This document shows, in pieces, positions 30,260-46,047 of a DNA stretch of 64,000 nucleotides (positions are counted from its first letter, which is position 1; each line of letters begins with the position of its first letter). Below the pieces are notes generated by a model that ran no database searches, was not told the origin of the DNA, and saw nothing but the letters and a program-made list of their open reading frames with translations. Where the stretch lies: IMG/VR virus record IMGVR_UViG_3300028569_002417, positions 161,528 to 225,527 of that record; one strand, 5' to 3'. A program made the position numbers and the translations under genes.

Positions 30260-30291
30260 AATGCCTAGAAATTATTTTCTAGGCATTTTTT
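30260..30291 (+). terminator. Intrinsic terminator upstream of cas12i
   Basis: aatgcctagaaa / tttctaggcatt plus T run. Confidence 0.75.
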
Positions 30292-30292
30292 C

Positions 30293-30321
30293 TTTACAAA
30301 AAAATAAAAGTGTTGTACACT
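30293..30321 (+). promoter_or_regulatory. Sigma70-like promoter of cas12i
   Basis: TTTACA (30293-30298), 17 nt, TACACT (30316-30321); same boxes at 52716-52744. Confidence 0.65.
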
Positions 30322-30362
30322 GCTCAGTAGAAATCCGCCACAAGGGCTACAGGAGCAGTGTC

Positions 30363-33300
30363 ATGGTCAGCGATAGCACTATTCGTCCTTATGCCAGCAA
30401 ATTGGCACCAAATGATCCTAAGCTGAAAATGCTTAACGATACATTCAATTGGCTAGACCATGCATACAAGGTATTCTTTGATGTATCAGTAGCACTTTTT
30501 GGTGCTATTGAACATGAAACTGCTCAAGAATTGATAGGTGAAAAAAGTAAATTCGACGCAGATCTAATCTGTGCTATCATGTGGTTTCGCCTAGAAGAAA
30601 AATCCGATAACCCCGGACCTCTCCAAACAGTAGAACAAAGAATGAGACTGTTCCAGAAATACTCTGGACACGAACCATCTTCTTTCACACAAGAATACAT
30701 CAAAGGAAACATAGATTCAGAAAAATATGAATGGGTAGATTGTCGTCTCAAATTTATAGACTTAGCTAGAAATATTAACACAACCCAAGAATCACTCAAA
30801 ATTGATGCATACACTCTTTTCATGAATAAATTAATTCCTGTAAGCAAAGATGATGAATTCAACGCTTATGGCTTGATTTCACAACTTTTTGGAACAGGAA
30901 AGAAAGAAGACAGATCAATCAAAGCAGCAATGCTTGAAGAAATCTCAAATATTCTCGCAGACAAAAAGCCAGATACTTGGGAAGAATATCATGATTTAAT
31001 TAAAAAAAATTTCAATGTTGATAATTACAAAGAACTTAAAGAAAAATTAAGCGCAGGAAGCAGTGGCCGTGATAGTTCTCTAGTAATTGACCTCAAAGAA
31101 GAAAAAACAGGACTACTTCAACCTAACTTTATCAAAAATCGTATTGTTAAATTCAGAGAAGATGCTGATAAAAAGAAAACTGTATTTTTATTGCCCAATA
31201 GAATGAAATTGAGAGAATTTATTGCTTCACAAATTGGACCATTTGAACAAAATAGCTGGTCAGCTGTTCTAAACAGGTCTATGGCTGCAATTCAATCTAA
31301 AAATAGCAGCAACATTCTATACACTAATGAAAAAGAAGAACGTAATAATGAAATTCAGGAATTGTTAAAAAAAGACATCTTGTCAGCAGCAAGTATATTA
31401 GGCGATTTTCGTCGTGGAGAATTTAACAGATCAGTGGTTTCAAAAAACCACTTGGGAGCAAGACTCAATGAGCTTTTTGAAATATGGCAAGACTTAACAA
31501 TGGATGATGGCATTAGAAAATATGTTGATCTTTGTAAAGATAAGTTTTCCAGAAGACCTGTAAAGGCATTGCTTCAATACATTTATCCATATTTCGATAA
31601 AATTACTGCAAAGCAATTCCTTGATGCAGCTAGTTACAACACACTTGTTGAAACCAATAATCGTAAGAAGATTCATCCAACTGTCACAGGACCAACAGTT
31701 TGTAATTGGGGGCCTAAGTCTACAATTAATGGATCAATAACACCACCAAATCAAATGGTCAAAGGAAGACCAGCAGGATCTCATGGAATGATCTGGGTCA
31801 CAATGACAGTCATAGATAATGGACGTTGGATCAAGCATCACCTTCCATTCTATAACTCACGCTATTATGAAGAACACTATTGCTACAGAGAAGGTCTGCC
31901 TACAAAAAATCAACCTCGTACTAAACAACTTGGAACTCAAGTAGGATCAACAATTTCTGCCACAAGTCTTGCTGCTCTTAAATCTCAAGAAGAGCAAGAC
32001 AGAAGGAATGATCGTAAAAATCGATTCAAAGCCCATAAATCTATCATCAGATCACAAGAGAACATTGAATATAATGTTGCTTTTGATAAGTCAACTAATT
32101 TTGATGTAACACGAAAAAATGGTGAGTTTTTCATCACTATCTCTTCTAGAGTTGCTACTCCAAAATATAGTTATAAATTAAATATTGGCGATATGATCAT
32201 GGGACTGGATAATAACCAAACAGCCCCATGCACATATTCAATTTGGCGTGTAGTGGAAAAAGATACAGAAGGTAGCTTCTTTCATAATAAAATTTGGCTT
32301 CAATTGGTAACTGACGGGAAAATAACAAGCATTGTTGACAATAACCGTCAAGTCGATCAGCTTTCTTATGCTGGCATCGAATACTCCAATTTTGCAGAAT
32401 GGAGAAAAGATCGTCGCCAATTCCTTCGATCAATTAACGAAGATTACGTTAAAAAATCAGATAATTGGCGTAATATGAATCTTTATCAATGGAATGCTGA
32501 ATATTCTCGTTTGCTTCTTGATGTCATGAAAGAAAATAAGGGCAAAAATATTCAAAATACATTCCGTGCAGAAATAGAAGAATTAATTTGTGGTAAGTTC
32601 GGTATAAGATTGGGAAGTCTTTTTCATCATTCACTCCAATTTCTTACTAATTGTAAGAGTCTTATATCATCTTACTTTATGCTTAACAATAAAAAAGAAG
32701 AGTATGATCAAGAGTTGTTTGACAGTGATTTCTTTAGGTTGATGAAAAGTATTGGGGACAAACGTGTTAGGAAACGCAAAGAGAAATCCTCAAGGATTTC
32801 ATCTACAGTATTGCAAATTGCAAGGGAAAATAATATCAAGTCTTTGTGTGTTGAAGGTGATTTACCTACAGCCACAAAGAAGACTAAGCCAAAACAAAAT
32901 CAAAAATCAATAGATTGGTGCGCCCGTGCTGTTGTCAAAAAATTGAATGATGGCTGTAAGGTATTGGGAATTAATTTACAGGCCATTGATCCAAGAGACA
33001 CAAGTCACTTAGATCCATTTGTTTATTATGGAAAGAAATCTACTAAAGTTGGAAAAGAAGCTCGATATACAATTGTTGAGCCATCCAATATAAAGGAATA
33101 CATGACAAATAGATTCGATGACTGGCATCGAGGGGTTACCAAAAAGTCAAAAAAGGGTGATGTTCAAACAAGCACTACTGTTCTTCTTTATCAAGAAGCT
33201 TTAAGGCAATTTGCTAGTCATTACGAACTTGATTTTGACTCTTTGCCAAAAATGAAATTCTATGATTTGGCTAAAAGATTGGGAGATCATGAAAAAGTGA

Positions 33301-33503
33301 TTATCCCTTGTCGTGGAGGAAGAGCTTATCTGTCTACTTATCCAGTGACAAAAGATTCCTCGAAAATAACTTTCAATGGTAGAGAAAGATGGTATAATGA
33401 ATCAGATGTGGTAGCTGCTGTTAACATCGTGCTGAGAGGCATAAGAGATGAAGACGAGCAGCCTGATGATGCCAAAAAACAGGCACTCGCTCGCACAAAG
33501 TAA
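30363..33503 (+). CDS. cas12i: Type V-I CRISPR effector Cas12i (1046 aa)
   Basis: AGGAG RBS then MVSDSTIRPY; LFQKYSGHEPS, FGTGKK, RuvC I IMGLDNN, RuvC II LCVEGDL, DWCARAV, TSHLDPFV, RGGRAYL, RuvC III SDVVAAVNI; adjacent array with AGAAATCCGTC..TTGACGG handle. Confidence 0.93.
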   Translation: MVSDSTIRPYASKLAPNDPKLKMLNDTFNWLDHAYKVFFDVSVALFGAIEHETAQELIGEKSKFDADLICAIMWFRLEEKSDNPGPLQTVEQRMRLFQKYSGHEPSSFTQEYIKGNIDSEKYEWVDCRLKFIDLARNINTTQESLKIDAYTLFMNKLIPVSKDDEFNAYGLISQLFGTGKKEDRSIKAAMLEEISNILADKKPDTWEEYHDLIKKNFNVDNYKELKEKLSAGSSGRDSSLVIDLKEEKTGLLQPNFIKNRIVKFREDADKKKTVFLLPNRMKLREFIASQIGPFEQNSWSAVLNRSMAAIQSKNSSNILYTNEKEERNNEIQELLKKDILSAASILGDFRRGEFNRSVVSKNHLGARLNELFEIWQDLTMDDGIRKYVDLCKDKFSRRPVKALLQYIYPYFDKITAKQFLDAASYNTLVETNNRKKIHPTVTGPTVCNWGPKSTINGSITPPNQMVKGRPAGSHGMIWVTMTVIDNGRWIKHHLPFYNSRYYEEHYCYREGLPTKNQPRTKQLGTQVGSTISATSLAALKSQEEQDRRNDRKNRFKAHKSIIRSQENIEYNVAFDKSTNFDVTRKNGEFFITISSRVATPKYSYKLNIGDMIMGLDNNQTAPCTYSIWRVVEKDTEGSFFHNKIWLQLVTDGKITSIVDNNRQVDQLSYAGIEYSNFAEWRKDRRQFLRSINEDYVKKSDNWRNMNLYQWNAEYSRLLLDVMKENKGKNIQNTFRAEIEELICGKFGIRLGSLFHHSLQFLTNCKSLISSYFMLNNKKEEYDQELFDSDFFRLMKSIGDKRVRKRKEKSSRISSTVLQIARENNIKSLCVEGDLPTATKKTKPKQNQKSIDWCARAVVKKLNDGCKVLGINLQAIDPRDTSHLDPFVYYGKKSTKVGKEARYTIVEPSNIKEYMTNRFDDWHRGVTKKSKKGDVQTSTTVLLYQEALRQFASHYELDFDSLPKMKFYDLAKRLGDHEKVIIPCRGGRAYLSTYPVTKDSSKITFNGRERWYNESDVVAAVNIVLRGIRDEDEQPDDAKKQALARTK

Positions 33504-33630
33504 GTCCTTGTCTTCAAAAGACTTACGAAATTTGCTCTTTGACAAGTAGGTTATTCTCATGTGGGTTAAGCATAACCTCTCGCTAATTGGATCGTAAGTC
33601 CTTACTCAGTATGGTATTGTGGGACAAGCC

Positions 33631-34554
33631 CCCACAATACCTGAGAAATCCGTCCTTCGTTGACGGTGCAATCCATCATGCATAATATAATTTTCATCGC
33701 TTCCCACAATACCTGAGAAATCCGTCCTTCGTTGACGGACCTATTGCTCGCCTGCCAGTGCCTTTCCCAGCGAGTTCCCACAATACCTGAGAAATCCGTC
33801 CTACGTTGACGGCGATGAAAATATACTATGTTATGCAGAAGATTTTATCCCACAATACCTGAGAAATCCGTCCTACGTTGACGGCTATGAGTAATTTTGA
33901 AGCTACAGATAGTTTTCCATACCCACCCACAATACCTGAGAAATCCGTCCTACGTTGACGGTCAAGTAATTCGATGCGTGTTTTATTTGTTTGAACCACC
34001 CACAATACCTGAGAAATCCGTCCTACGTTGACGGCTCCATCGAGACTTGTCGGCCCCACAATACCTGAGAAATCCGTCCTACGTTGACGGCTTGGGCAGT
34101 CCCGAAGGGTCTAACTGCAAAACGCTACCCACAATACCTAAGAAATCCGTCCTACGTTGACGGGGACTAGAGGCGCAGCAGGCTGAAGTTGAAGCTTATG
34201 CCCACAATACCTGAGAAATCCGTCCTCCGTTGACGGCCTGAGCCATGCCGCCAGTTGCTTGGCTTTAGAATTCCCACAATACCTGAGAAATCCGTCCTAC
34301 GTTGACGGGGTTGGAAGAAAAGAAGGGACGATCTTTTTGTTTTGTCCCACAATACCTGAGAAATCCGTCCTACGTTGACGGTGCGATTCAAAAGAGAATG
34401 TTGGGCTTGGCCAGTGGGCCCCACAATACCTGAGAAATCCGTCCTACGTTGATGGGCCGTGTTCTCGATGACGACCCACAATACCTGAGAAATCCGTCCT
34501 GCGTTGACGGAATGAGGTGACCTTCGTAAAGGTAGGCCCACAACACCCAAGAAA
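33631..34554 (+). CRISPR. CRISPR array: 13 full 36-nt repeats, 1 truncated terminal repeat, 13 spacers
   Basis: Consensus CCCACAATACCTGAGAAATCCGTCCTACGTTGACGG starting at 33631, 33703, 33777, 33849, 33926, 33999, 34055, 34128, 34201, 34273, 34346, 34420, 34475; degenerate at 34537. Spacer lengths 36,38,36,41,37,20,37,37,36,37,38,19,26. Confidence 0.98.
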
Positions 34555-35042: not shown

Positions 35043-36457
35043 GTGGAGATAGTCGGTTTTGAACATCTTCACTTGCACTAGTTTACTCCGATTTTTCTGT
35101 ATTAGATGGTTTTGGATCTGTAGAAGAGTATTGTGTTCGTGCTCCTCAGATCAATCAAAAGTTTTTAACAATTAGCGATCACGGTATGATGGGAGCAATT
35201 CCACGTCAGATTCGTGGATGTGAAAAAATTAATGACAAGTATGGCAAAGACACTCTTAGCCCCATATTTGCAGTCGAACTGTATATGAATCGTCTTCAGC
35301 CTGAGATGACAGAGCAGGACGAAGGAAAGAAAATATATTCAAGTCTGACAGAAGAAGAGCAAAGCGAATTTAAGTCTAGCAGTCATTTGCTCGCTATTGC
35401 CTACAGCAACGAAGGATATAAGAATCTTGTTCGTCTTTCTAGTTGGGGCTGGACAAAGGGATTTTATCGTCGCCCAAGAGTCAACTACGAACAATTACTG
35501 AAATATAAAGAAGGAATTATTTTCACAAGTTGTTGTTATGCCAGTGAGATTGGAAGAGCATTTGACAAAGGTGGAGAAGAAGCTGGATTCGCTATGGTCG
35601 AGCGTTATGTTGAAATGTTCGGCAAAGAACATTTCTATCTCGAAATAATGCTTTTGGATTTCAAAAAGCAAAAACCATATGATGAATTTATTGTAAAAGC
35701 AAAGGAAAAGTATGGTCTTAAAATCATACTCACAAATGATTGCCATTATTGCAACAAAGAAGATAGTCAATATCAGAGACTTATGTTGATGATGCAGACT
35801 AATCGTACTATTGCCGAAATTGAAAAGGCAATGAAGGAAGATTCAAATCAAGATTTCTTTGAGTTGCAGGATGCGAATCTTTGGATGAAGAGCGAAGAGG
35901 AATTGAATGATAAGTGGTTGAGTGATTATCAAGATTCAATTCCTTATGAGATTTTTTGCGAGGCCAAGAGGACAACTGTTGATATTTGCAAAAAGGCAAA
36001 GGGAGTTCAGCTTGATCGTAGTTTGAAATTACCATTTATTCCCGATGGTGATGAAAAATTGAGGGAAGAAATCATGATTGGTTTCCAAAAAAGGAAGCTC
36101 CCAAAGACAAGGGAATATCTTGATAGAATCAAGGAAGAATACAGTCTTATCATCAGGAAGGGATTTACGAGTTACTTTTTGATTCAAAAGATGATGACAG
36201 ATGAGGCTCGTAGAGTCTGTCGTGATTTGCTTGGATTTGGTGACGGCTCACAGGCTGTTGGTCCCGCTAGAGGCTCAGCAGCAGGTTCACTTATTTGCTA
36301 TTGTCTAGGCATCACTAGTGTCGATCCTGTGCGTGAAGGCTTACTCTTCAGTCGTTTCATGAGTGAAGCTCGTGGAGGAAGAAGCTTGCAGTTAGAATTC
36401 AAGAATATCGATCCTCTTCCACTAGAGGAGTTGGAATTGAGGCAGTCGGGGTTGTGA
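35043..36457 (+). CDS. dnaE: DNA polymerase III alpha, N-terminal PHP part; frame interrupted by 8 nt at 35079-35086
   Basis: AGGAGG + GTG gives MEIVGFEHLHLH, stop; second frame SDFSVLDG..ISDHG..HLLAIA..EGYKNL..TNDCHY..RGSAAGSLICYCLGIT..LLFSRF. Confidence 0.88.
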
Positions 36458-36462
36458 ATAAG

Positions 36463-37080
36463 TCAAGCATTGATTGCAGTGATGTCAGCTTCTTTTTCTG
36501 GTTCTGGAGAAACAGGTTCTTCTATGCAGCCCCTGTAACTTATTTGACCCTCTACTTCTCTTGTTTTATCTGTCATTTGTCTTGAATTTTCTCTTGCTAG
36601 ATCAGCTTGATATGTTGCTTCGTCATCGTTCGGAATTAGTATGCTGTGTGGAAGCCCAGACAACATTGTGTTAATGAGGTTTGAAACTTTTGTAAATAGT
36701 TCTTTTTCCATGAAAAGTTTTTGGCAAATTGTGATTTGTCTTCTTGTTGTTGCTTCACTTATTGAATCTCTTACTTCATCATAATTCATAAGACGATGTC
36801 TCATCATGTTGATGAAAACAGTTTTTGAGTTTGAAAAACCTCTTTCTCTGCCTCTCATTTCTGCTTCTAGTTCTTTTACATATTGTTCTTTGCTTTCTCT
36901 TTCAATGTTTTTTATAGAGAAAAATCGTTTATCTCTTTTACCACTTGATTTCATCGCACCTATGATGACCATTTCAAGCTTTGGAAAAGATACAACTTTT
37001 GTTCTTGTTGCTGCTTCAAAGAGAAACTGATTGCATTCAAGTATTTCTCTTTCAACAAGCCATTCAATGAATGAAAACAT
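36463..37080 (-). CDS. Hypothetical protein, capsid-targeting-like N-terminus
   Basis: MFSFIEWLVERE. Confidence 0.6.
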   Translation of the reverse strand: MFSFIEWLVEREILECNQFLFEAATRTKVVSFPKLEMVIIGAMKSSGKRDKRFFSIKNIERESKEQYVKELEAEMRGRERGFSNSKTVFINMMRHRLMNYDEVRDSISEATTRRQITICQKLFMEKELFTKVSNLINTMLSGLPHSILIPNDDEATYQADLARENSRQMTDKTREVEGQISYRGCIEEPVSPEPEKEADITAINA

Positions 37081-37105
37081 ATTTTACCTTTTTTAGAAAC
37101 TTTAA

Positions 37106-37912
37106 TTATTTATGCATGGTTGACAACAGTTTTTGAGGACAAACTTTATTATTTATTGTTATAATTTGATAATTATCTGGGTTGCAGCAAGGAATGGTAG
37201 ATGGTTCATAATCCATAATTTCAGGGACGTTAAATATAAATTTAACTATATCTTTCTGCCAACTTATTCTTTCACGAACTTTAGTTTCATCTGGATAAAG
37301 AAGAGTCATTCTTGGATGGTTAATAGAACCAGCATAATGGCTTGTTCCTGTATCGCATCCAACATAGTATTTTGATTTTTGAATATATTTGAATGTTGTG
37401 TGGATATCATCACTATAAACAACATTCTTGTCATTCAAAGGAAATAAATTTTTCTTTTCCGAATCGATCACACAGATTGTATCTTTGAATTTAGATTTAA
37501 GTGCGTAAAATAATTCTTGTGGGTTATTTATTGCTCTGGGAGTATTGTATTCAGGTGAAAGACAAGGTATGAAAACACAGTCATACTGAATTTCTGATTC
37601 ATTATATTTATATTGGCTTTCTGTGTAAAAGCCATTTTTCGACAGAAAAGGCGACCAAATCCATAAGTTTATGAAATTAACATTTGGATTTGAATTGATG
37701 TTATCAGGCAAGAAACGAACAAGATTGTCTGGAAACAATGATAATGCTGATATATGTGTGTTTGAATCTTTGTAGTCAATATTTATATTTTTTGATTTGA
37801 TGTATTTGTACAAAGCAGTACATTGAATTTCATCTCCAATCCTATTGGTGTAATTGGATTGGTAGATTGAATGACTGACAGAATCCCAGATTTCTTTGAA
37901 TTTATTAAACAT
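37106..37912 (-). CDS. GT9-like (heptosyltransferase-type) glycosyltransferase
   Basis: RIGDEI, YYVGCDTGTSHYAG. Confidence 0.65.
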   Translation of the reverse strand: MFNKFKEIWDSVSHSIYQSNYTNRIGDEIQCTALYKYIKSKNINIDYKDSNTHISALSLFPDNLVRFLPDNINSNPNVNFINLWIWSPFLSKNGFYTESQYKYNESEIQYDCVFIPCLSPEYNTPRAINNPQELFYALKSKFKDTICVIDSEKKNLFPLNDKNVVYSDDIHTTFKYIQKSKYYVGCDTGTSHYAGSINHPRMTLLYPDETKVRERISWQKDIVKFIFNVPEIMDYEPSTIPCCNPDNYQIITINNKVCPQKLLSTMHK

Positions 37913-37922
37913 ATAAAAAAAA

Positions 37923-37948
37923 TTAAGGGGAGAAAAATCTCCCCTTAA
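37923..37948. terminator. Hairpin, probable terminator on minus strand
   Basis: ttaaggggaga / tctccccttaa with A run on left. Confidence 0.6.
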
Positions 37949-37972
37949 CAATTGAGTTATGATTATTTATTT

Positions 37973-38893
37973 TCACTCATCTTCATCTTCATCTTCATCT
38001 TCATCTTCATCTTCATCTTCATCTTCATCTTCATCTTCATCTTCATCTTCATCTTCATCTTCATCTTCATCTTCATCTTCATCTTCGTCTTCTTCTTCAT
38101 CTTCGTCTTCGTCTTCATCTTCATCTTCATCTTCATCTTCATCTTCATCTTCATCTTCATCTTCATCTTCATCTTCATCTTCATCTTCATCTTCATCTTC
38201 GTCTTCATCTTCGTCTTCGTCTTCATCTTCATCTTCGTCTTCATTTGAAGCTATTTCAAAGATTGATTGGTTGAGTTTACGATTGAAGGATTCGTTGGTG
38301 GCAACTAGTGTTGCGATTGTTTCTATTGCTTCTGGCTGTTGTGACATGGTTAGCAAGAAAGCTTCAAAAAGACCTGTGCGCTTCATTTGGAGAACTGCGT
38401 CAAGGATATACTTTTCGTTTTCTTCGCAAACAGAGATTGCCTCTTTGATTGCTTCGTAGGCATGAGAAGGGTTGACGCTAAGACCAGCAAGTCTTTCGTT
38501 ACGAACCTTTTTTGTGAATTCGGCAAGGCTTAGTCTTTTGTTGCTATCAAGCCATTCTTGAGTCGTTTTGACATGAGGATAGCTACCTTTTTCTTTTGGT
38601 TCTTCGCCATGTGCTTTGGTTGGCATTTTTTCATAACCTTTGCCACCTTTATGACCAAGACCGTCAGAACCGAATCCTTTGTTGCGGTCAGCAGCATCTT
38701 TTCCGCCCTTGTAGGGAGAAACGCTACCGCTTTGGCTTTTGCCACCTGCATTTTTAGGGGTTTTGCCAAGACTTGGTGCTGTTGGTGTTGGGCCTTCATA
38801 ATCTGCTACGATATCGACTCTTGCTTTTTGTCCTTTGTCGTGAGCCTTTTTTCTCATTGACTCAACATAGGACTGAAAATTTTGGTTTACCAT
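37973..38893 (-). CDS. Protein with 89-residue Asp/Glu C-terminal tract
   Basis: GGAG RBS, MVNQNFQSYVES; (ED)n tail. Confidence 0.7.
   Translation of the reverse strand: MVNQNFQSYVESMRKKAHDKGQKARVDIVADYEGPTPTAPSLGKTPKNAGGKSQSGSVSPYKGGKDAADRNKGFGSDGLGHKGGKGYEKMPTKAHGEEPKEKGSYPHVKTTQEWLDSNKRLSLAEFTKKVRNERLAGLSVNPSHAYEAIKEAISVCEENEKYILDAVLQMKRTGLFEAFLLTMSQQPEAIETIATLVATNESFNRKLNQSIFEIASNEDEDEDEDEDEDEDEDEDEDEDEDEDEDEDEDEDEDEDEDEDEDEDEDEEEDEDEDEDEDEDEDEDEDEDEDEDEDEDEDEDEDEDEDE
37976..38242 (-). repeat. Hexanucleotide microsatellite (GAAGAT)n encoding (ED)n
   Basis: Directly visible; occasional GAC variants and one EEE. Confidence 0.97.
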
Positions 38894-38972
38894 TTTTTCT
38901 CCGTTTGCGTAAAACAACCTGTTAATCTATATAATCAATTAAAATTAAAAAAAACGTACTAAATAAAATTAC

Positions 38973-39324
38973 GGGGCCGTATTTAGAATTCGATTCGGAT
39001 GGACGGCTTGTGAGTGGCATGTAGAGGTTGGTCAGAAGGCCTCTTAAAAAATCTGACTAAAGCCTTAACTGGCGAAACTGTTTACGCTATGGCTGCATAA
39101 GTGCAACCACAGACTTAGGTAGCGATGCTAGTAGCGACCGAAAGTTTGATGTAAAATCTGGCTGGTCATATGCATTTCAATGGGCAAATGACGAGATAAA
39201 GTTGATAGTGCTGAAAAAGGTTTTATTTGTTGTACCTTTTCAGATGACATCAAGCAATAAAATAAACATGTAGAGGCTCACAGGTAGTTATGCGAAGACA
39301 GCGGGGCGGGTCCGCTCGGCTCCA
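38973..39324 (+). ncRNA. ssrA: tmRNA; tag peptide (A)GETVYAMAA
   Basis: 5' GGGGCCG pairs with 3' CGGCTCC-A including G3-U; ATTCGA motif; TAACT-GGC resume codon 39071, stop 39098-39100; 352 nt. Confidence 0.9.
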
Positions 39325-39370
39325 CTTGCCATGAAGACCTCTTGTTCATAAAATAGAACAAGGGGTCTTT

Positions 39371-40591
39371 ATGCTTATTTCTATTTTCACGCCAACTCAT
39401 AATACAAAATATCTTAATCGTTTATATCAAACCATAAAAAATCAAACTTACCAGCAATGGGAATGGATTATTTGTCCCAATAATGGTGCTGTTGTTGATA
39501 TTAAGGATGATCCTAGAGTTAAGGTTTTTCCAACAAACGGCTCTACCAATATTGGTTATTTGAAGAAATATGCTGCGAGTAAGTGTAAGGGCGAAGCAAT
39601 CATGGAAGTTGACCATGATGATGAGCTTTTTCCTAATGCTGTTGAGGAATGTGCAAAGGCATTTGAAGATTCGACTGTTGATTTTGCATATTCAAATTGC
39701 TGTGACGTGCAGGAAAATTATGAGCCAAGATTTTTTAATGAGAAATTTGGCTGGGTAAACAGACCATGTGTTTATGATGGTCGTAATCTTGTTGAGATGG
39801 TTGCATTTCCTCCTGATCCTGCGAGTATAAGCAAGATTTGGTATGCTCCCAACCATTTTAGATCTTGGCGCAAATCATTTTATGATCGTATTGGTGGTCA
39901 CGATGAGAGCATGGATGTTCTTGATGATCAAGATATAATGTGTAGAACTTATATTCATGGCAAGATGTTTCATATTGACAAGCCATTATATGTTTATCAT
40001 TTGCATCCAGAAAACACTTGTTATGGCGAAAAGAATGCTAAGATTCAGGAATTGTGCGTTGAATTGCATGACAAATACATTTACAAACTTGTTGAAAAGT
40101 GGTGTGATGTCAACAATTTGAGAAAAATTGATTTATGTGGTGGATTTAGCAGGCCAATTGGATATGAAAGTGTCGATCTTGAAGGTGCTGATATTACTGC
40201 TGATTTGAATGAGCGTTGGCCTTTTGAAGATGGAAGTGTTGGTGTTTTTAGGGCTCATGATGCTCTTGAACATTTGAAAAATCCTATTCACGCTATGAAA
40301 GAAGCATATCGTTGTCTTGCTCCTAATGGTTGGTTTTTAACATTAACTCCAAGTACTGATGGTCGTGGTGCTTTCCAAGATCCTACTCACATTTCTTTTT
40401 GGAACAGCAATAGTTTTTGGTATTATACAAAAGCAGAGCAGGCCAAATATATTGGCACTCCTGTTAAGTTTCAGTTGAATAGGATCAAGAATTTTTATCC
40501 AAGTGATTGGCATAAGTTTCATCAGATTTTGTATGTAAAAGCAGATTTGCTGAAATTTTCTGGTCGTGTTGCAGGTGGGGTTGAGATTTAA
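39371..40591 (+). CDS. GT2 glycosyltransferase fused to SAM-methyltransferase-like domain
   Basis: ISIFTPTHN, EVDHDD, IGGHDE; IDLCGG, ADLNERWPF, HDALEHL, AFQDPTH. Confidence 0.85.
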   Translation: MLISIFTPTHNTKYLNRLYQTIKNQTYQQWEWIICPNNGAVVDIKDDPRVKVFPTNGSTNIGYLKKYAASKCKGEAIMEVDHDDELFPNAVEECAKAFEDSTVDFAYSNCCDVQENYEPRFFNEKFGWVNRPCVYDGRNLVEMVAFPPDPASISKIWYAPNHFRSWRKSFYDRIGGHDESMDVLDDQDIMCRTYIHGKMFHIDKPLYVYHLHPENTCYGEKNAKIQELCVELHDKYIYKLVEKWCDVNNLRKIDLCGGFSRPIGYESVDLEGADITADLNERWPFEDGSVGVFRAHDALEHLKNPIHAMKEAYRCLAPNGWFLTLTPSTDGRGAFQDPTHISFWNSNSFWYYTKAEQAKYIGTPVKFQLNRIKNFYPSDWHKFHQILYVKADLLKFSGRVAGGVEI

Positions 40592-40670
40592 TGATGGATG
40601 TTGTTTTTTCACATGAATATGGCGGGGAAATAGTCTTGTTTTGAGGATTGTTTCTTTGTATTATCGGGTG

Positions 40671-41990
40671 ATGAGCAAGCAAAGATTCCTAGATGTTTGT
40701 GTCGCTTCTCTTCGTGCAAAGGGTTTGTACGAAGAGCAGCGTTATGCCAAAAGATTGAAGTGGGAAACAGAAGAGATCATTGCGAAGGAAAAGCACGAAT
40801 ATTTCCTTGATTTGTATGATAAGAAGGTGAAGTATCCTAAAAATCAAAACAATCTTTTGGTTTGTTGGCTTTTAGGTTTAGTTCCAGATCATGACATTGA
40901 GAAAGATCCTTCAAATGTATTCACGGGTGACTTGCCCGATGTAGACATTGATTATATTCCAATGGTTCGTGATTATTTGAAGAATGAATGGGCACCGAAA
41001 ACATTTGGCGAAGATTATGTTTGTAACATTGGTAACTATACGACATTTGGAATTAAATCGGCATTGATTGACATGGCTCGTGTTCATGGCGAAAGTCGTG
41101 AAGAGGTCATGGCAATCACTAAGAATCTTGATGCTAAGGATGATGAAGGCAAACCAATCACATGGGATGCAGCATTAAGGCTTGACCCTGAATTCAAAGC
41201 ATATACTGAGAAATATCCGTCAATTGCTCAAGCAACAAAAAAATTAATTAATCGCAATCGTGGCATGGGAGTACATGCTGGTGGATTGATTGTTTCGAGA
41301 ATTCCACTTCATGATCTTGTTCCTTTGGTTAAAAGGAAAGGTAATCCTCAAGCTAGTGCATGGGTAGAGGGACTACATGGGCAGGATTTGCAGCCTGTTG
41401 GCCTTGTTAAATTTGACTTACTTGTGATTAGTAATCTTTTGCAAATTGCTCGTTGTTGCGAGACTGTTAGAATCAATCATGGTGTTACTTCAATTTGTGC
41501 CAAGCCCGGAGAGCCAGATTGGTCTGATGTTGATTGTTGGAGGAATGATCCTGATTCAATTGCAATGGCTAATCGTGGTGATTTGAAATGTATATTTCAA
41601 TTTGATTCTGAGGGAATGAGGGCATTGGTTAGGGCTGGAGGAGTTGATCGATTTGAAGATTTAGTGGCATATTCCAGTTTATTCCGACCCGGCTGTATTA
41701 AATGTTTGCAAAAAGATTCTTTTGTTATGTTATACAATGGTCAAAAAGAAATAAAAAATTTGCAGCCGGGCCTTGATAATATAGCGTATCTAAATTCTCA
41801 AAGAAAAGTAAATTACACAAAAAGATATTTTGTCATAAATTCTGGTTATAAAAAAATATTGAGAATCACAACTAAAAGTGGCAAAGTCTTGCTTCTCTCG
41901 CCTGATCATCCAGTCTTGACTGATAAATTGAAATATATAAAGGCAGGAGTTCTTAAAATTGGAGATAAAGTTGGAGTAATTAAAAAATAA
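40671..41990 (+). CDS. dnaE: DnaE middle part (catalytic palm) ending in N-intein
   Basis: LPDVDIDY, GVHAGGL, GLVKFDLL, IFQFDSEG, LFRPG then intein block A. Confidence 0.92.
   Translation: MSKQRFLDVCVASLRAKGLYEEQRYAKRLKWETEEIIAKEKHEYFLDLYDKKVKYPKNQNNLLVCWLLGLVPDHDIEKDPSNVFTGDLPDVDIDYIPMVRDYLKNEWAPKTFGEDYVCNIGNYTTFGIKSALIDMARVHGESREEVMAITKNLDAKDDEGKPITWDAALRLDPEFKAYTEKYPSIAQATKKLINRNRGMGVHAGGLIVSRIPLHDLVPLVKRKGNPQASAWVEGLHGQDLQPVGLVKFDLLVISNLLQIARCCETVRINHGVTSICAKPGEPDWSDVDCWRNDPDSIAMANRGDLKCIFQFDSEGMRALVRAGGVDRFEDLVAYSSLFRPGCIKCLQKDSFVMLYNGQKEIKNLQPGLDNIAYLNSQRKVNYTKRYFVINSGYKKILRITTKSGKVLLLSPDHPVLTDKLKYIKAGVLKIGDKVGVIKK
41703..41987 (+). mobile_element. Split intein N-half (95 aa)
   Basis: CLQKDSFV (block A), GKVLLLSPDHPVLT (block B), LKIGDKV then stop. 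Confidence 0.88.
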
Positions 41991-42025
41991 TTCATATATA
42001 TCCTTGCACAGAGCGGGAGATATAT

Positions 42026-43039
42026 ATGATTTGTAAAATATGCAATAAAGAGGTATCAGAAAAATTTTATCGCCATCTAAATAGTAGTCATAAGATGAAA
42101 AAAGGAGATTATCTAAATTTGTTTCCAGAGCAAAAAGAGGAGTACAAAAGTCAAATTTCTGTTTTGTGGAACAAAGGAAAAACCAAGTGCGATGATGATC
42201 GCATCATGGCGATTGCCGATAAGATAAAAAAATTCACAGGACAGGAACACATACGAAAGCAAAGATCGGAAAACATGAAAAAAATGTATCAAAATGGTGA
42301 TATGTTGTCCCCTGAGATGAGAGCTTATGTGCAAAAAAAAGGCACAGATGGATGGGTCAAAAAGGTTAAGGAATCTTCTTTTGAAGAAAGAAAGATATTA
42401 TTAAAGAATTTTTCTGATGCTGGCAACAAAAAAATACAAGAAAATAAAATAAATCGCACGCCTGAAGATTATATGCGAATTTGCAAAAATGCCAAAGGAA
42501 AAGCTCAATATGGTAATTGTGCAGAATGCGGAAATCAAATTGTAATATGGGTTGGAGGCAAGCCACGACCTAAACAAAGATTTTGTAATCAATCATGTCA
42601 AAAAATATATCAAAAAAAACATCCTTTTTATACATTATCTCATGTTGGAAAGCATTATTTTTCAGAAAAAATGCAATGTGAATTTTATCTAAGATCAAAA
42701 TTAGAAATTTGGCTTGCAGAAATGTTAGATGTAAATGAAAAAGTGAATTCTTGGCATATTACACCATTCGCTGTAAGCTACGAGTTTCATGGAAAAAAAC
42801 GATTGTATTACCCAGATTTCATGATAAACTCAAAGTGGGTTGTTGAATTGAAATCTGGTTATATATTTGACATCGATGCCGACAAAAATAGAGCAAAGTT
42901 TATGGCTGCACAAGATTATTCAGAGGAGATAAATTGTGAGTTTTTTTATTGGCAATTTGATAATCACAATATGACAAAAAAGTTATTTGAAAAAGATCAA
43001 AGGGTGATTGATTTCTTTTCATTTTTACAGGAAGCATGA
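42026..43039 (+). CDS. Free-standing putative homing endonuclease (Zn fingers + TnsA-N-like PD-(D/E)XK)
   Basis: CKIC..HL..H, GKTK..D.RI, CAEC..FCNQSC, LRSKLE, YYPDF, VELKS; lies between split-intein halves. Confidence 0.8.
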   Translation: MICKICNKEVSEKFYRHLNSSHKMKKGDYLNLFPEQKEEYKSQISVLWNKGKTKCDDDRIMAIADKIKKFTGQEHIRKQRSENMKKMYQNGDMLSPEMRAYVQKKGTDGWVKKVKESSFEERKILLKNFSDAGNKKIQENKINRTPEDYMRICKNAKGKAQYGNCAECGNQIVIWVGGKPRPKQRFCNQSCQKIYQKKHPFYTLSHVGKHYFSEKMQCEFYLRSKLEIWLAEMLDVNEKVNSWHITPFAVSYEFHGKKRLYYPDFMINSKWVVELKSGYIFDIDADKNRAKFMAAQDYSEEINCEFFYWQFDNHNMTKKLFEKDQRVIDFFSFLQEA

Positions 43040-43040
43040 A

Positions 43041-43172
43041 ATGCTTGATTTTGAAGAAATAGTTCAGATTGAAGAGGTTGGTGAAGATGATTGTTATGAT
43101 ATTATGTTGTTAGAAAAAGACTTGTATTTGGACGAGCCAAATTTTATAGCTAACGATATTGTTGTTCACAAT
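43041..43172 (+). mobile_element. Split intein C-half (44 aa)
   Basis: EIVQIEEVGEDDCYDI...NFIANDIVVHN followed by Cys+1. Confidence 0.9.
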
Positions 43173-45560
43173 TGTGGCATGGACAAGCGTTATGTTGAGC
43201 GTAAGAAGGGTCATGAAAAATATGAAATTCATCATTTAATCAAGCCTATTCTTGAAAAAACATATGGAGTTATGATTTATCAAGAGCAAATCATGCAGAT
43301 ATTGAATGTTGTTGGTGAAATTCCTTTGAAGGATTGTGAAGCTGTAAGAAAAGCTATATCAAAGAAGAAAATAGAATCTATTGAAAAATATAAAGATATG
43401 TTTATTAAGAATGGGCAGAAAAATTTAAGTTTTACAAAAGAACAAATGGAAGAGTTTTTTAATCAAATATTGTCTTGGAGTGAATATGGCTTTAATAAAA
43501 CTTTGACCGAAGACACAATTATAAATTGTGTTGATGGCGCAAAGCAAATAAAAGACATTTGTGCCGGAGACATAGTTTATTCTATAAATGAAAAGGGAGA
43601 ACAGGTACAAACTGAAGTTGCGGCAGTTCATGATCATGGCGTGGTCAATGTTGTGGAGGCGACATTTGATGACGGCTATGTTGTGAGGTGTACTTATGAT
43701 CACAAATTTTTGACTGAAGAAGGACAAGTTCCTCTTTGGTTAATTGTTAAAGACAACATGGTTGTGCTGAGTTCTCCGTTGGGAGAACATGCAGGGGAAG
43801 AAAAAGAATGGTCATCTGGCAAGGTGTGGACAAATAATAAAAACTCTGGAAAAGATGAAAGAGCATCGAGAGAATTGCAAGGAGTGCAACTATCTGAAGT
43901 GGAGGCTGGAGGGAAAGAAATACATTTCCAGATGCGGAGTGGAATTTCTGCGTTCACCTCAACTGGTCCAAAATCATCAGAAAACTGGAGAAATGAATTC
44001 GGAGTGGTTCACTTCACTCCAGAGTATGCTTCTATCACCAATACCCGGAATTTGGTGTCTAGGAGAATATTACGAGTTGTGACCGTGGGTAAAAGACAAT
44101 GTTACGATCTTGAAGTCGCCATCTCAACTCACAACTTTATTCTTCCGAATGGAATAATCACATCGAACTCACATGCTGTGGCTTATACTTACATCAGCAT
44201 GTATCTTTTGTATTTGAAGGTTCATTACCCTCATGAATTTTATGCTAGCATGTTATCATGTGAGACTTTGGCTGAGAAGATAAAAGACATTAAGATGGAG
44301 GCTAAGATACATGGTGTTGAGATGCATCGTCTTGACATTAACAAATCTGGCATTAATTTTGAGCTTAAGGATAATTTAATTTATTTTGGTTTTAGTAATG
44401 TGAAGGGTATAGGAGAGGGTCCTGCTCAAAAGATAGTGGCTGGTCAGCCGTATCGTAGTTTTGAGGATTTCCTTTATCGATGTGGAACAGATGCTTCGAT
44501 GTTGAAGCCGATACTTGGTTTAAGATGTTTTAGGGATCGTGATCCAATTACTTTGTGGAAATTTGCAGAGCATTTCAAAGAATGTTTTAAGAAAAACGAA
44601 GAGAAGCGCAAGCGTTTTGGTACTTCTTTGGAGAGGTACGAAGACGAGTTAAGGGAGCTTATTCCTGAAGTTGAATTCAAATTATCTGATTTGAGTGGTG
44701 ATTCACCATTTGATAACATTGAGTATCAGCAAAAATATGATAAGGAAGAGGAGATTACTGTTCTCAAGGAGTATGAGTGTAAGGAAGGGGATGGTGTTGG
44801 AAGGATTGAGATGGTATATGTTCCTGTTGATGGGACTGATGTTGTGATTGAGCGTGAGGTGATGAGATATTACAAGAAGATTGCTACTAAGAGGCCTTGG
44901 AACAGGTGGAAGGATCTTAAGAATCTTTGGAATAAAAGAAAGAGAACTATAGCGAGATTTTCTGATGCTGATTTCAAGACATTGCCAAGATTGATTGATT
45001 TCGATCCAGACCAATATGATATACCTAAGGATTTGGCTAAGGAGTTTAAGAATCCGGTTGTTTCAGAAGAAAAGTTTTATGGATTTGCTTGGATTCATGA
45101 GCTTGAGAGAAGTCCTGATTATAGAGGGAATTTGACATTTGATTCTTTGAGAAGTGACATTGACAGTTCTTCTGGTCCTGTTGAGTTGAGGGTTAAGAAA
45201 GTAATTCAGATGACTAGTAAAAAGGGTTCTACTTATTCTCAGGTATTGGCGGAAGATGTTACTGGTCAAGAGAATAAGATTAATGTTTGGTCTGATGACT
45301 GGGATCGTTGGCATAAAGAATTAAGTGAAGGTAACTTAATTAGGATAAGATTGCAACCTCCTTCTGGTGGTTTCAATACATTCTTGTTGGAATCAAATCA
45401 GAATGGCAAGTATAGAGGTCAGAAGAGATATCGAGACAAGGATGATGATCCTCGTGTTATTGTCATGAGAGTTGGCTTAAAAGAAGAAGAGAAATTCATG
45501 ACAGATGAAGAGGTTTTGGAACTTTTTAATAATTTAGGTATGGAAAATAAAAATGACTGA
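43041..45560 (+). CDS. dnaE: DnaE C-terminal part, starting with C-intein and containing a cis intein
   Basis: ILEKTYGVMIYQEQIMQ, YGFNK..SHAVAY, YLKVHYP, DINKS, VKGIG, OB-fold end. Confidence 0.92.
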   Translation: MLDFEEIVQIEEVGEDDCYDIMLLEKDLYLDEPNFIANDIVVHNCGMDKRYVERKKGHEKYEIHHLIKPILEKTYGVMIYQEQIMQILNVVGEIPLKDCEAVRKAISKKKIESIEKYKDMFIKNGQKNLSFTKEQMEEFFNQILSWSEYGFNKTLTEDTIINCVDGAKQIKDICAGDIVYSINEKGEQVQTEVAAVHDHGVVNVVEATFDDGYVVRCTYDHKFLTEEGQVPLWLIVKDNMVVLSSPLGEHAGEEKEWSSGKVWTNNKNSGKDERASRELQGVQLSEVEAGGKEIHFQMRSGISAFTSTGPKSSENWRNEFGVVHFTPEYASITNTRNLVSRRILRVVTVGKRQCYDLEVAISTHNFILPNGIITSNSHAVAYTYISMYLLYLKVHYPHEFYASMLSCETLAEKIKDIKMEAKIHGVEMHRLDINKSGINFELKDNLIYFGFSNVKGIGEGPAQKIVAGQPYRSFEDFLYRCGTDASMLKPILGLRCFRDRDPITLWKFAEHFKECFKKNEEKRKRFGTSLERYEDELRELIPEVEFKLSDLSGDSPFDNIEYQQKYDKEEEITVLKEYECKEGDGVGRIEMVYVPVDGTDVVIEREVMRYYKKIATKRPWNRWKDLKNLWNKRKRTIARFSDADFKTLPRLIDFDPDQYDIPKDLAKEFKNPVVSEEKFYGFAWIHELERSPDYRGNLTFDSLRSDIDSSSGPVELRVKKVIQMTSKKGSTYSQVLAEDVTGQENKINVWSDDWDRWHKELSEGNLIRIRLQPPSGGFNTFLLESNQNGKYRGQKRYRDKDDDPRVIVMRVGLKEEEKFMTDEEVLELFNNLGMENKND
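43500..44168 (+). mobile_element. Cis intein (223 aa) at YGFNK|SH, begins with Thr
   Basis: TLTEDT, CTYDHKFLT, CYDLEV..HNFILPNGIITSN|S. Confidence 0.88.
43789..44082 (+). CDS. Overprinted alternative-frame ORF inside the intein (Cys/His-rich)
   Basis: GGGAG RBS + ATG; spans the intein linker and ends just inside the C-terminal splicing region. Confidence 0.45.
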   Translation: MQGKKKNGHLARCGQIIKTLEKMKEHRENCKECNYLKWRLEGKKYISRCGVEFLRSPQLVQNHQKTGEMNSEWFTSLQSMLLSPIPGIWCLGEYYEL

Positions 45561-46047
45561 TGAATTAATTATCGATGAAAATAATTTTAGTACTTATTTC
45601 AGGGATTGTCGTTTGCATCGTCCTGAAAGAAGTGATGTCATGGCAAGATATTCTGCAATTGCAGAGTTTATTGATGGTCAGATGAAGAAAGATATCATTA
45701 ATTTGCTTTCAAGTTATGACAGTAAGGCTATTGCTGCTACTCAGGTTATGAGGAAGCTTGGATGTGCTACAGAAGGCGAATCTATAAGAATATGCAGGGA
45801 GGTAGCAGAAGATTTAGCTAATGGTATGGGGCCATTGGAAGTTGAGAATAAAGTTTACAAATATAAGATGGAAGTTTTTTATTATACGAAGAGGGAATAC
45901 GTTCCTGTTGATGATCCACATTGGACAGTAATTAGTATTGCAAATTTGGATAAATTCTTGGATAATGCAAATCAATTGGTTTCGATTAAGTCAAAAATCA
46001 TTGAACCGGAGAGTTCAAATGAGATACAAGTTGAGCAACATGTCTGA
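45553..46047 (+). CDS. Hypothetical protein
   Basis: Overlaps dnaE stop. Confidence 0.6.
   Translation: MTDELIIDENNFSTYFRDCRLHRPERSDVMARYSAIAEFIDGQMKKDIINLLSSYDSKAIAATQVMRKLGCATEGESIRICREVAEDLANGMGPLEVENKVYKYKMEVFYYTKREYVPVDDPHWTVISIANLDKFLDNANQLVSIKSKIIEPESSNEIQVEQHV

Follow-up and report, generated by a model that had tools for sequence, protein, structure and literature searches.

We describe here what is very probably a fractured dnaE gene, encoding the alpha subunit of DNA polymerase III (Pol III), in a huge freshwater phage: a mini-intein lies in the fingers domain of the polymerase, a free-standing nuclease gene lies inside the mini-intein, and the polymerase would be made as two polypeptides. 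The gene is located in a DNA stretch of 64,000 nucleotides (positions 161,528 to 225,527 of the IMG/VR virus record IMGVR_UViG_3300028569_002417), hereafter the window, to which all positions refer. The window forms the last 64 kb of a 225.5-kb record whose completeness was estimated by CheckV at about half, and the phage is therefore a huge one.

Three open reading frames (ORFs) abut on the plus strand (40641/40671-41990, 42026-43039 and 43041-45560; Table 1). The first has an alternative TTG start at 40641, upstream of 40671, and the third starts with the ATG at 43041 in a frame that is opened upstream by a TTG at 43008. The N-extein in the first ORF ends in AYSSLFRPGCIK, and the N-terminal intein half (IntN; CLQKDSFV...VGVIKK) follows directly after LFRPGCIK, with the TGT codon of Cys1 at 41703 and the last codon ending at 41987. 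The second ORF encodes the nuclease. The third begins with the C-terminal intein half (IntC), whose end, VVHN|C (43161-43175), leads into the C-extein sequence CGMDKRYVERKKG. The original prediction had placed a naturally split intein with halves of 95 and 44 residues between 41703 and 43172, and these positions and lengths proved exact when checked on the sequence.

Table 1. Features of the fractured dnaE locus, with their positions in the window.
Feature	Positions	Strand	Details
DnaE piece A, PHP and first third of palm	35186-36457	+	separate gene, 4.2 kb upstream of piece B
DnaE piece B, N-extein, rest of palm and first half of fingers	40671-41702	+	PF07733 positions 100-259
IntN, 95 amino acids	41703-41987	+	Cys1-Leu2 in block A, S-P-D-H in block B; stop codon 41988-41990
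RNA hairpin pairing the GGGAG ribosome site and the nuclease ATG	41987-42034	+	dG (folding free energy) -20.5 kcal/mol, z -5.3 to -6.5
Putative homing endonuclease gene, free-standing, 337 amino acids	42026-43039	+	22 homologue clusters
N-terminal C2H2-type zinc finger (C3, C6, H17, H22)	42032-42091	+	invariant in 22 sequences
Second zinc module, four-cysteine ribbon (C165, C168, C187, C191)	42518-42598	+	invariant in 22 sequences
PD-(D/E)xK core, TnsA / endonuclease I type	42644-42958	+	candidates E227, D264 in YYPDF, E274-x-K276
AGGAAG ribosome site of the IntC gene	43029-43034	+	inside the 3' end of the nuclease ORF, seven bases upstream of the ATG
IntC, 44 amino acids	43041-43172	+	block F DDCYDI, block G NDIVVHN; Cys+1 at 43173
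C-extein first segment, second half of fingers, to SEYGFNK	43173-43499	+	Pfam finger positions 82-165; alignment with Taq and E. coli DnaE
Second, contiguous mini-intein, 223 amino acids	43500-44168	+	GFNK|SHA, E. coli K758|S759; Intein_splicing 7e-11
C-extein remainder: SHAVAY motif, HhH domain, DnaE C-terminal region	44169-45560	+	HHH_6 2e-12; aligned to Taq DnaE 815-925

The insertion is precise. When 150 nucleotides on each side were joined and compared with the uninterrupted gene of the related locus L007, they aligned without a gap (84% nucleotide identity, E 2e-93), so the intervening 1470 nucleotides represent an exact in-frame insertion. Through the alignment with L007, the junction corresponds to Q644|S645 of E. 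coli DnaE (RPGPLQ|SGM at residues 641-647, within the compared segment 636-660), and excision would restore the conserved RPGxLx|(S/C)GM segment of the DnaE fingers. The original prediction that splicing would rebuild a conserved DnaE segment thus agrees, for the predicted product, with gap-free alignments to intein-free alleles and to E. coli DnaE. It had also held that the site differs from the split site of cyanobacterial DnaE, and this is upheld by the distance between the two: the Ssp/Npu junction AEY|CFNKSH, which we take to correspond to E. coli Y754|G755, lies about 110 residues downstream of the site described here.

Occupied and empty forms of the site were compared in nine related IMG/VR loci collected by their N-extein. 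At seven of them the gene is uninterrupted and reads RPGCLA-SGMTKRY (L007, with a protein 89% identical), RPGCLK-MGMDKRY, RPGPLG-MKMQERY or similar, and a contiguous intein occupies Q644|S645 in none of the nine. The residue following the junction (+1) is Cys in occupied alleles only, and Ser or Met in empty ones. In four lineages that carry the element its size varies little (1460-1474 nucleotides). Its GC content (0.29-0.32) is like that of the adjacent C-extein (0.29), and composition consequently gives no signal.

The intein halves and the exteins were searched separately rather than as a joined protein. Cys1, Leu2 and the Ser and His of block B are invariant in four lineages whose exteins share 48-71% identity; the HN|C ending is kept in L004, L006, L018 and L020, and a contiguous relative (protein P0048) has HN|S. 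By its Cys1, SxxH block B, terminal HN and Cys+1, all of which are invariant in the relatives, the element reads as a class 1 intein in split form; a naturally split intein is what the original prediction had seen. Pfam gave weak Intein_splicing matches on the N piece. In the PDB, IntN matched inteins only, all of them remote (Pho RadA, E 0.005; gp41-1, E 0.86). The matches of IntC were weak, the inteins among them being DnaB only (best E 0.68) next to one unrelated protein with a similar score. Neither half matched the Npu or Ssp DnaE inteins in the PDB at E values up to 10; these structures matched only the second intein of this gene, and weakly. The two halves differ strongly in net charge, IntN being +13 and IntC -13. 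A two-chain model folded them as one intertwined domain (229 contacts, partner predicted local distance difference test (pLDDT) of 92, 100% agreement between runs), with an interface score of 0.92 versus 0.01 for the best of three controls. Among solved complexes, 51 of 78 attain the mark used for such scores, as do 2 of 108 mismatched pairs. The model supports the association of IntN and IntC, without demonstrating it. As a new orthogonal split intein, the pair is a possibility suggested by these sequences.

It is also conceivable that the intein halves merely dock the polymerase pieces non-covalently, splicing having been lost and the intein being retained in the complex of pieces B and C. 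Other fragmented phage enzymes, such as the NrdA of phage Aeh1, are reported to come together without splicing (PMC3045599), and piece A of the same DnaE is likewise separate and has no intein. We nevertheless consider such docking very improbable, since the residues of the splicing chemistry (Cys1, Ser and His of block B, the His-Asn end and Cys+1) have all been kept across lineages as distant as those above, and since Cys+1 is confined to occupied alleles, as expected if the nucleophile is needed. Furthermore, a 139-residue Hedgehog/intein (HINT) domain retained in the fingers would adjoin conserved polymerase motifs. Trans-splicing is thus the reading that we prefer.

When 1.84 billion representatives were searched exhaustively by HMMER with IntN as the query, 115 matches were obtained. 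In 23 of these the protein ends in IntN directly after (R/H)PGxxx, with the Cys-Leu start unchanged in all 23, and in 25 it ends in a related IntN in other contexts, several of them after FQFDTxLAK, which is another DnaE site. Three proteins (P0048, P0073 and P0103) hold a contiguous intein at the same RPG site, and in 64 the match is internal and in another context. The mini-intein of P0048 (a protein of 1027 amino acids) comprises 139 residues (352-490) and can be aligned to both intein halves of the window, to IntN as far as GDKV and to IntC starting at position 4. Consequently, the nuclease gene sits in the loop usually occupied by nested endonuclease domains. In related phages, as far as their sequences are concerned, the site is found in three states: empty, with a contiguous mini-intein, and fractured.

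The nuclease between the intein halves belongs to a well-populated group, with 22 clusters of homologues at 30-98% identity, all of full length. In Pfam, PF24308 (DUF7487) was matched above its gathering threshold, at profile positions 158-215 only (1e-6, 29.1 bits versus a cut-off of 27), and PF08722 (Tn7_TnsA-like_N) stayed below its cut-off of 26.5 (8e-5, 23.6 bits). Most of the homologues have precomputed matches to both families. A profile search of the PDB ranked TnsA (0.011) and T7 endonuclease I (0.036) first and gave no match to Vsr or to I-Bth0305I (3r3p). The AlphaFold model (pLDDT 87.5), which shows two beta hairpins at residues 159-176, led to a similar result: Foldseek placed TnsA (1t0f and 1f1z) at ranks 1-4 (E 2e-4 to 1e-3, probability 1.0, 14-15% identity) and I-Bth0305I at rank 33 (E 0.26). 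Family searches (Pfam, PHROG) returned no GIY-YIG or Vsr match. Within the nuclease domain, invariance is limited to E227, D264, E274, K276 and some aromatic and Pro residues, with P263-D264-F265 conserved as a block and the last pair reading E274-L-K276 in the window. An EDxHD motif is absent, as the 22 sequences share no invariant His outside the zinc finger. Look-alikes of the N-terminal finger in BFVD are annotated as C2H2 zinc fingers, and many phage proteins in that database share the build of zinc finger plus nuclease, some of them annotated as endonuclease or putative homing endonuclease. This architecture is therefore common in phages, though uncharacterised as far as we found. The description of the intervening nuclease as TnsA-N-like with zinc fingers, also made in the original prediction, is supported by TnsA being the best match by profile and by fold and by the two invariant zinc modules.

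The genomic context of this nuclease is uniform. Every homologue context that was examined (L004, L005, L006, L016, L018, L020 and L025) lies between DnaE IntN and IntC, including L016, where the nuclease shares 30% identity and DnaE is much smaller, and L025, where DnaE is differently built. At every locus examined the neighbours were the two DnaE pieces, and no TnsB, TnsC or transposon context was found. At L024, a related IntN occupies a different site, FQFDTDLAK|C, and the intervening gene is another one, encoding a 554-residue protein with DUF723 and a weak MTES_1575 match (L024:2-4731), presumably of the Vsr-like kind. This locus may correspond to a DnaE fractured locus of the type reported in 2009. 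For a homing endonuclease, such confinement of a single nuclease family to a single site would be predicted. A further variant was observed at L025 (5360-7251), whose DnaE is more distant but has the same split intein and where the gap holds two genes, a DUF7487 nuclease of 341 amino acids and a 289-residue ORF with faint matches to T5orf172/MUG113, families which we take to be GIY-YIG-like.

Look-alikes of the nuclease core in PHROG and BFVD are also labelled head closure, head completion nuclease or Holliday junction resolvase, and one could suppose that the gene is not a homing enzyme, being instead a passenger with another phage function (e.g., DNA processing) or a decaying remnant. This supposition appears improbable to us. 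The gene is not decaying, since none of the 22 homologue clusters is shortened and the catalytic residues and zinc ligands are invariant throughout. In addition, the gap of this split intein was the setting of the gene in all contexts examined, including homologues at only 30% identity and DnaE genes of a different build. Such fidelity is typically shown by site-specific selfish elements rather than by housekeeping genes, and the related intein at the other site (L024) has a different nuclease. We therefore retain the homing endonuclease as the more plausible role.

The element has persisted in lakes over several years. The stretch was found in lake-water metagenomes of about ten studies from 2019 to 2025, and a second IMG/VR record (L008) is 100% identical to the window sequence. 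The presence of the sequence in a second record and in the metagenomes of several studies means that it is no assembly artefact. Logan contigs of four runs were placed on positions 40600-45600. Runs X3 and X7 contain the whole arrangement at >99% identity. In X8, the extein flanks were recovered at a word depth of about 95, and 41667-43224 on a contig of depth 7.5. A joint from 41696 to 43179, with 12 other letters between, represents a net loss of exactly 1470 nucleotides (depth 8.1) and reads RPGCLK-ALMDKRY; a second joint, from 41674 to 43228, has a depth of 78.9. At the second intein of the gene, a joint from 43396 to 44172 has a depth of 91 versus 10.5 for the contig that contains the intein. 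In the lake of X8, most genomes of the lineage thus appear to be without both inteins, with a minority carrying both. In the metatranscriptome X17 there are three short contigs, one within the nuclease gene and two within the second intein, which are compatible with transcription but do not prove it.

These allelic states bear on what the nuclease cuts at present. We lean slightly towards the empty site as its target. A contiguous-intein allele is the less probable target; in that case the nuclease would convert contiguous inteins to split ones, and the polymorphism between empty and occupied sites would come from ordinary phage recombination. Such conversion matches the origin model of Dassa et al. 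2009 (PMC2677866), contiguous relatives at the same site do exist (P0048, P0073 and P0103), and the nuclease gene occupies the canonical position of the endonuclease domain within an intein. On the other hand, the alternative allele in X8 differs by exactly 1470 nucleotides, which corresponds to the empty site rather than to a contiguous intein. Contiguous alleles are also rare, with 3 representatives versus 23 split ones, and they were encountered in none of the nine related IMG/VR loci. With these counts in mind, we keep the empty dnaE allele as the favored target.

The 35 nucleotides between the stop codon of piece B and the ATG of the nuclease, together with its first codons, form a hairpin that was matched by none of 200 shuffles (Table 1), and hairpins over the same elements occur in L004, L005 and L006 (z -2.5, -4.8 and -4.4). 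Dassa et al. reported hairpins in 15 of 16 fractured loci and related them to the Aeh1 mobE case (PMC2677866). At the other end, the TGA of the nuclease (43037-43039) is followed one base later by the ATG of IntC, an abutment that implies translational coupling; the stop and the next start overlap or are separated by a 2-nucleotide gap in L004, L005, L006, L016 and L020. The T4-type late promoter TATAAATA, found in 10 of the 2009 loci, is absent from the nuclease leader of the window. A consensus scan of 40400-45800 for promoters and terminators gave no more sites than shuffled sequences did, and for this reason no transcription model was drawn.

As a separate observation, the nuclease leader (window 41985-42028; L004:4961-5003; L005:4960-5003) resembles the dnaE DNA just upstream of the insertion point. 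Within about 6.5 kb, the best match to 30 nucleotides of the leader lies 29-32 nucleotides before the start of the intein in L004 (19/30) and L005 (21/30); the match at the junction ranks fourth in L020 and is outside the top four in the window and in L006. In L004 and P0017 the leader reads KSYI(S/T)LYR(P/Q)GG in frame. This resemblance could be a relic of the target site, a mimic of the binding site or a product of chance.

Taken as a whole, the locus suggests the following course of events. The basic IntN and the acidic IntC would associate, electrostatically steered, into one HINT domain, and trans-splicing would join LFRPGCIK to CGMDKRY to yield a continuous B-C polymerase chain, which would work with the separately encoded PHP piece A. 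The hairpin would hold the synthesis of the nuclease low. During co-infection, the nuclease would cut dnaE alleles free of the element, and repair from the element-bearing genome would copy IntN, nuclease and IntC as one unit. As to its origin, the nuclease gene probably entered a contiguous intein similar to that of P0048, in line with the model put forward by Dassa et al. in 2009.

Several points weigh against this interpretation. Every functional step in it (splicing, cleavage and homing) is inferred. The evidence from X8 consists of Logan contigs and not of raw reads, and its joints, which have 30 letters on the shorter side and were placed at a likeness threshold of 90%, may derive from related organisms; the RNA contigs of X17 could be DNA carry-over. 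The high score of the two-chain model may stem from a memory of solved inteins. The hairpins of L004, L005 and L006 use other pairs than that of the window, so covariation cannot be claimed. The patchy presence of the element could result from precise loss by recombination with intein-free relatives and not from ongoing homing. Finally, a family A DNA polymerase domain (PF00476, 1.7e-30) is encoded elsewhere in the same record, outside the window, in a 446-residue open frame (G000:C1:149792-150601). DnaE is hence perhaps not the sole polymerase, and selection for splicing is assumed.

The family A polymerase ORF, and a dnaE broken into three pieces with two inteins, also invite the thought that the fractured dnaE is dispensable or dying and that the phage replicates by the family A polymerase or by a host enzyme. 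Among the alternatives considered here, this is the one to which we assign the least weight. All pieces are open and the motifs PDVDIDY, RPG and GFNK/SHA and the HhH domain are intact, observations on which the reading as a pseudogene was rejected. The three-piece layout is also kept in relatives at 48-71% identity, and the persistence of the element in lake metagenomes spans the years 2019 to 2025. A functional dnaE, fractured by the intein and its nuclease, therefore remains our interpretation.

Piece A matches PHP (2e-21) and DNA_pol3_alpha (8e-24, PF07733 positions 2-98), and there is no intein at the break between A and B. DNA_pol3_finger is matched at positions 27-107 before the fingers break and 82-165 after it. 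Three genes on the minus strand, whose function is unknown, lie in the interval between pieces A and B (36463-40591), as does a fusion of glycosyltransferase and methyltransferase; the separation recurs in the relative L005, with other genes intervening. The 96-residue head of piece B was considered as a degenerate copy of a region of piece A, an idea that was dropped because the BLASTP match was not significant (E 0.16). A blastn search of the 4.9-kb locus against 50,697 phage records gave no match, which leaves no annotated relative at hand.

Only four residues separate the second intein of the gene from the split site of cyanobacterial DnaE. Its first residue is Thr1 (ACT), and it ends in TSN without the penultimate His and is followed by Ser+1. 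Thr1 as the nucleophile is, to our knowledge, unusual among inteins. Homologous inteins at the GFNK|SHA site start with Ser (L005, L010 and L011) or Cys (L018), and the site is empty in L006, L007, L009, L013-L015 and L020. The ACT codon is unchanged in the contigs of three further runs, and the intein is missing from most X8 genomes. In L004 (6469-7140), the same site holds a different intein with Cys1, which is itself split: the ORF of its N-terminal half ends at 6789 and that of its C-terminal half starts at 6973, with about 190 nucleotides between them and no nuclease gene. This state is similar to the stage termed 'endonuclease lost' (gp41-7) in the 2009 model.

Other features of the window were noted in passing. 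A phage-encoded CRISPR system (30261-34520) includes a 1080-residue protein that matches Cas12i from end to end (PADLOC, 1584 bits, E 0), followed by an array with 13 copies of the 36-nucleotide repeat CCCACAATACCTGAGAAATCCGTCCTACGTTGACGG at a spacing of 72-77 nucleotides, two of 55-56. Tandem Repeats Finder returned nothing on this upstream repeat region, and the CRISPR array was shown by direct-repeat analysis. A third intein of the window, full and with a LAGLIDADG domain, splits a SpoVR-like protein of 932 amino acids (26309-29107; Pfam SpoVR 1e-97, LAGLIDADG_3 2e-20, Intein_splicing 1e-10). On the minus strand, at 37973-38917, a 314-residue protein without a Pfam match ends in about 100 alternating Asp and Glu residues, encoded by a long trinucleotide repeat of the GA(T/A) type.

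Literature searches on TnsA together with homing endonuclease and split intein found no paper, and those on huge-phage inteins, Pol III and split inteins with free-standing endonucleases gave nothing on this type of locus. Among the things that we did not find described are a TnsA / endonuclease I-like zinc-finger nuclease in a fractured gene, its strict tie to Q644|S645, the set of empty, contiguous and fractured alleles, and their apparent coexistence in one sample. No new principle is involved, as dnaE genes fractured in this way, with split inteins, had already been reported in 2009. Tentatively, we propose a joint reading for which our confidence is limited: the nuclease might found a family of homing endonucleases that is as yet uncharacterised, is directed at the Q644|S645 region of DnaE, mobilises a whole split intein as one cassette and would be distinct from the LAGLIDADG, HNH, His-Cys box, GIY-YIG, I-Ssp6803I-type PD-(D/E)xK and EDxHD families; the +13/-13 halves might form a fast orthogonal pair; and the lakes might offer a natural system. 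If this is true, lakes with empty and occupied alleles would allow the fracturing of a gene by an endonuclease to be watched in nature. Whether the host gene or the intein is cut, and in what way a long DNA site is recognised by a TnsA-like core that carries zinc fingers, are questions that can be tested. In addition, the gp41-1, NrdJ-1 and IMPDH-1 split inteins, which come from fractured genes, became leading tools for protein ligation. With its strong charge complementarity and its remoteness in sequence from every solved intein, the present pair can reasonably be considered as a candidate for an orthogonal tool.

Close intein systems are those of cyanobacterial Ssp and Npu DnaE, which are likewise naturally split class 1 inteins in the fingers of Pol III alpha with Cys1, Cys+1 and oppositely charged halves. 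In Npu DnaE the charge polarity is the opposite of that of the basic IntN and acidic IntC described here. The cyanobacterial halves are encoded at distant loci, whereas those of the phage are adjacent, with a nuclease gene between them, and occupy another site.

The nuclease can be compared with several enzymes. The homing endonuclease I-Ssp6803I is intron-encoded, small and tetrameric, and it has no zinc modules. Residing in a cyanobacterial tRNA intron, it provides a precedent for a homing endonuclease on the PD-(D/E)xK fold (PMC2677866), and it is not among the top 50 fold matches of the phage nuclease. With TnsA (1f1z, 1t0f) the nuclease shares the order E...PD...(E/Q)xK of its catalytic elements, but it lacks the TnsA C-terminal domain, has zinc modules attached to its core and is encoded within an intein. 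The EDxHD enzymes, defined by the motif E, D, x, H, D with a catalytic His and by NUMOD/HTH modules (PMC3239194), are similar in overall plan: I-Bth0305I and its relatives also combine an N-terminal DNA-binding region with a C-terminal nuclease of the restriction-endonuclease type, and they are found in introns and between split intein halves (PMC3239194). In contrast to them, the phage enzyme has no EDxHD motif, and zinc fingers take the place of the NUMOD/HTH modules. The mobE gene in nrdA of Aeromonas phage Aeh1 is a similar case of a free-standing endonuclease gene that splits an essential, replication-related phage gene, with a hairpin over the ribosome site that damps translation (PMC2677866; PMC3045599). 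However, mobE is of the HNH type, no intein is present and the protein halves join non-covalently, unlike the intein and E-PD-ExK nuclease found here.

The most similar systems are the fractured genes of Dassa, London, Stoddard, Schueler-Furman and Pietrokovski 2009, which include DnaE-1, DnaE-2, DnaE-3, gp41-1, NrdJ-1 and IMPDH-1 (PMC2677866). The layout, which the original prediction had called known, is indeed published there, three DnaE loci included. In both cases, adjacent gene halves on the same strand each carry an intein half, a free-standing endonuclease ORF lies between them, and a 5' hairpin covers the ribosome site of the endonuclease; the same layout recurs in seven loci related to the one described here. 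The hosts are also alike, being environmental phage-like replication genes, DnaE among them, interrupted at non-cyanobacterial sites, and one of the 2009 DnaE loci had a second intein as well. Our intein allele may already be seen in fragmentary form among the DnaE loci from the Global Ocean Sampling (GOS) data of 2009, which were compared by description only. The enzymes are different, since those of the published loci are GIY-YIG or Vsr-like (the latter were subsequently named EDxHD), with NUMOD/HTH modules, and the nuclease found here has an E-PD-ExK core with C2H2 and Cys4 modules. It would thus bring the number of gene-fracturing nuclease families to three, and this one is bound to a single target site. 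The 2009 model had been without complete genomes and loci, three alleles of one site and the apparent coexistence of alleles, all of which are provided by the present locus and those related to it.

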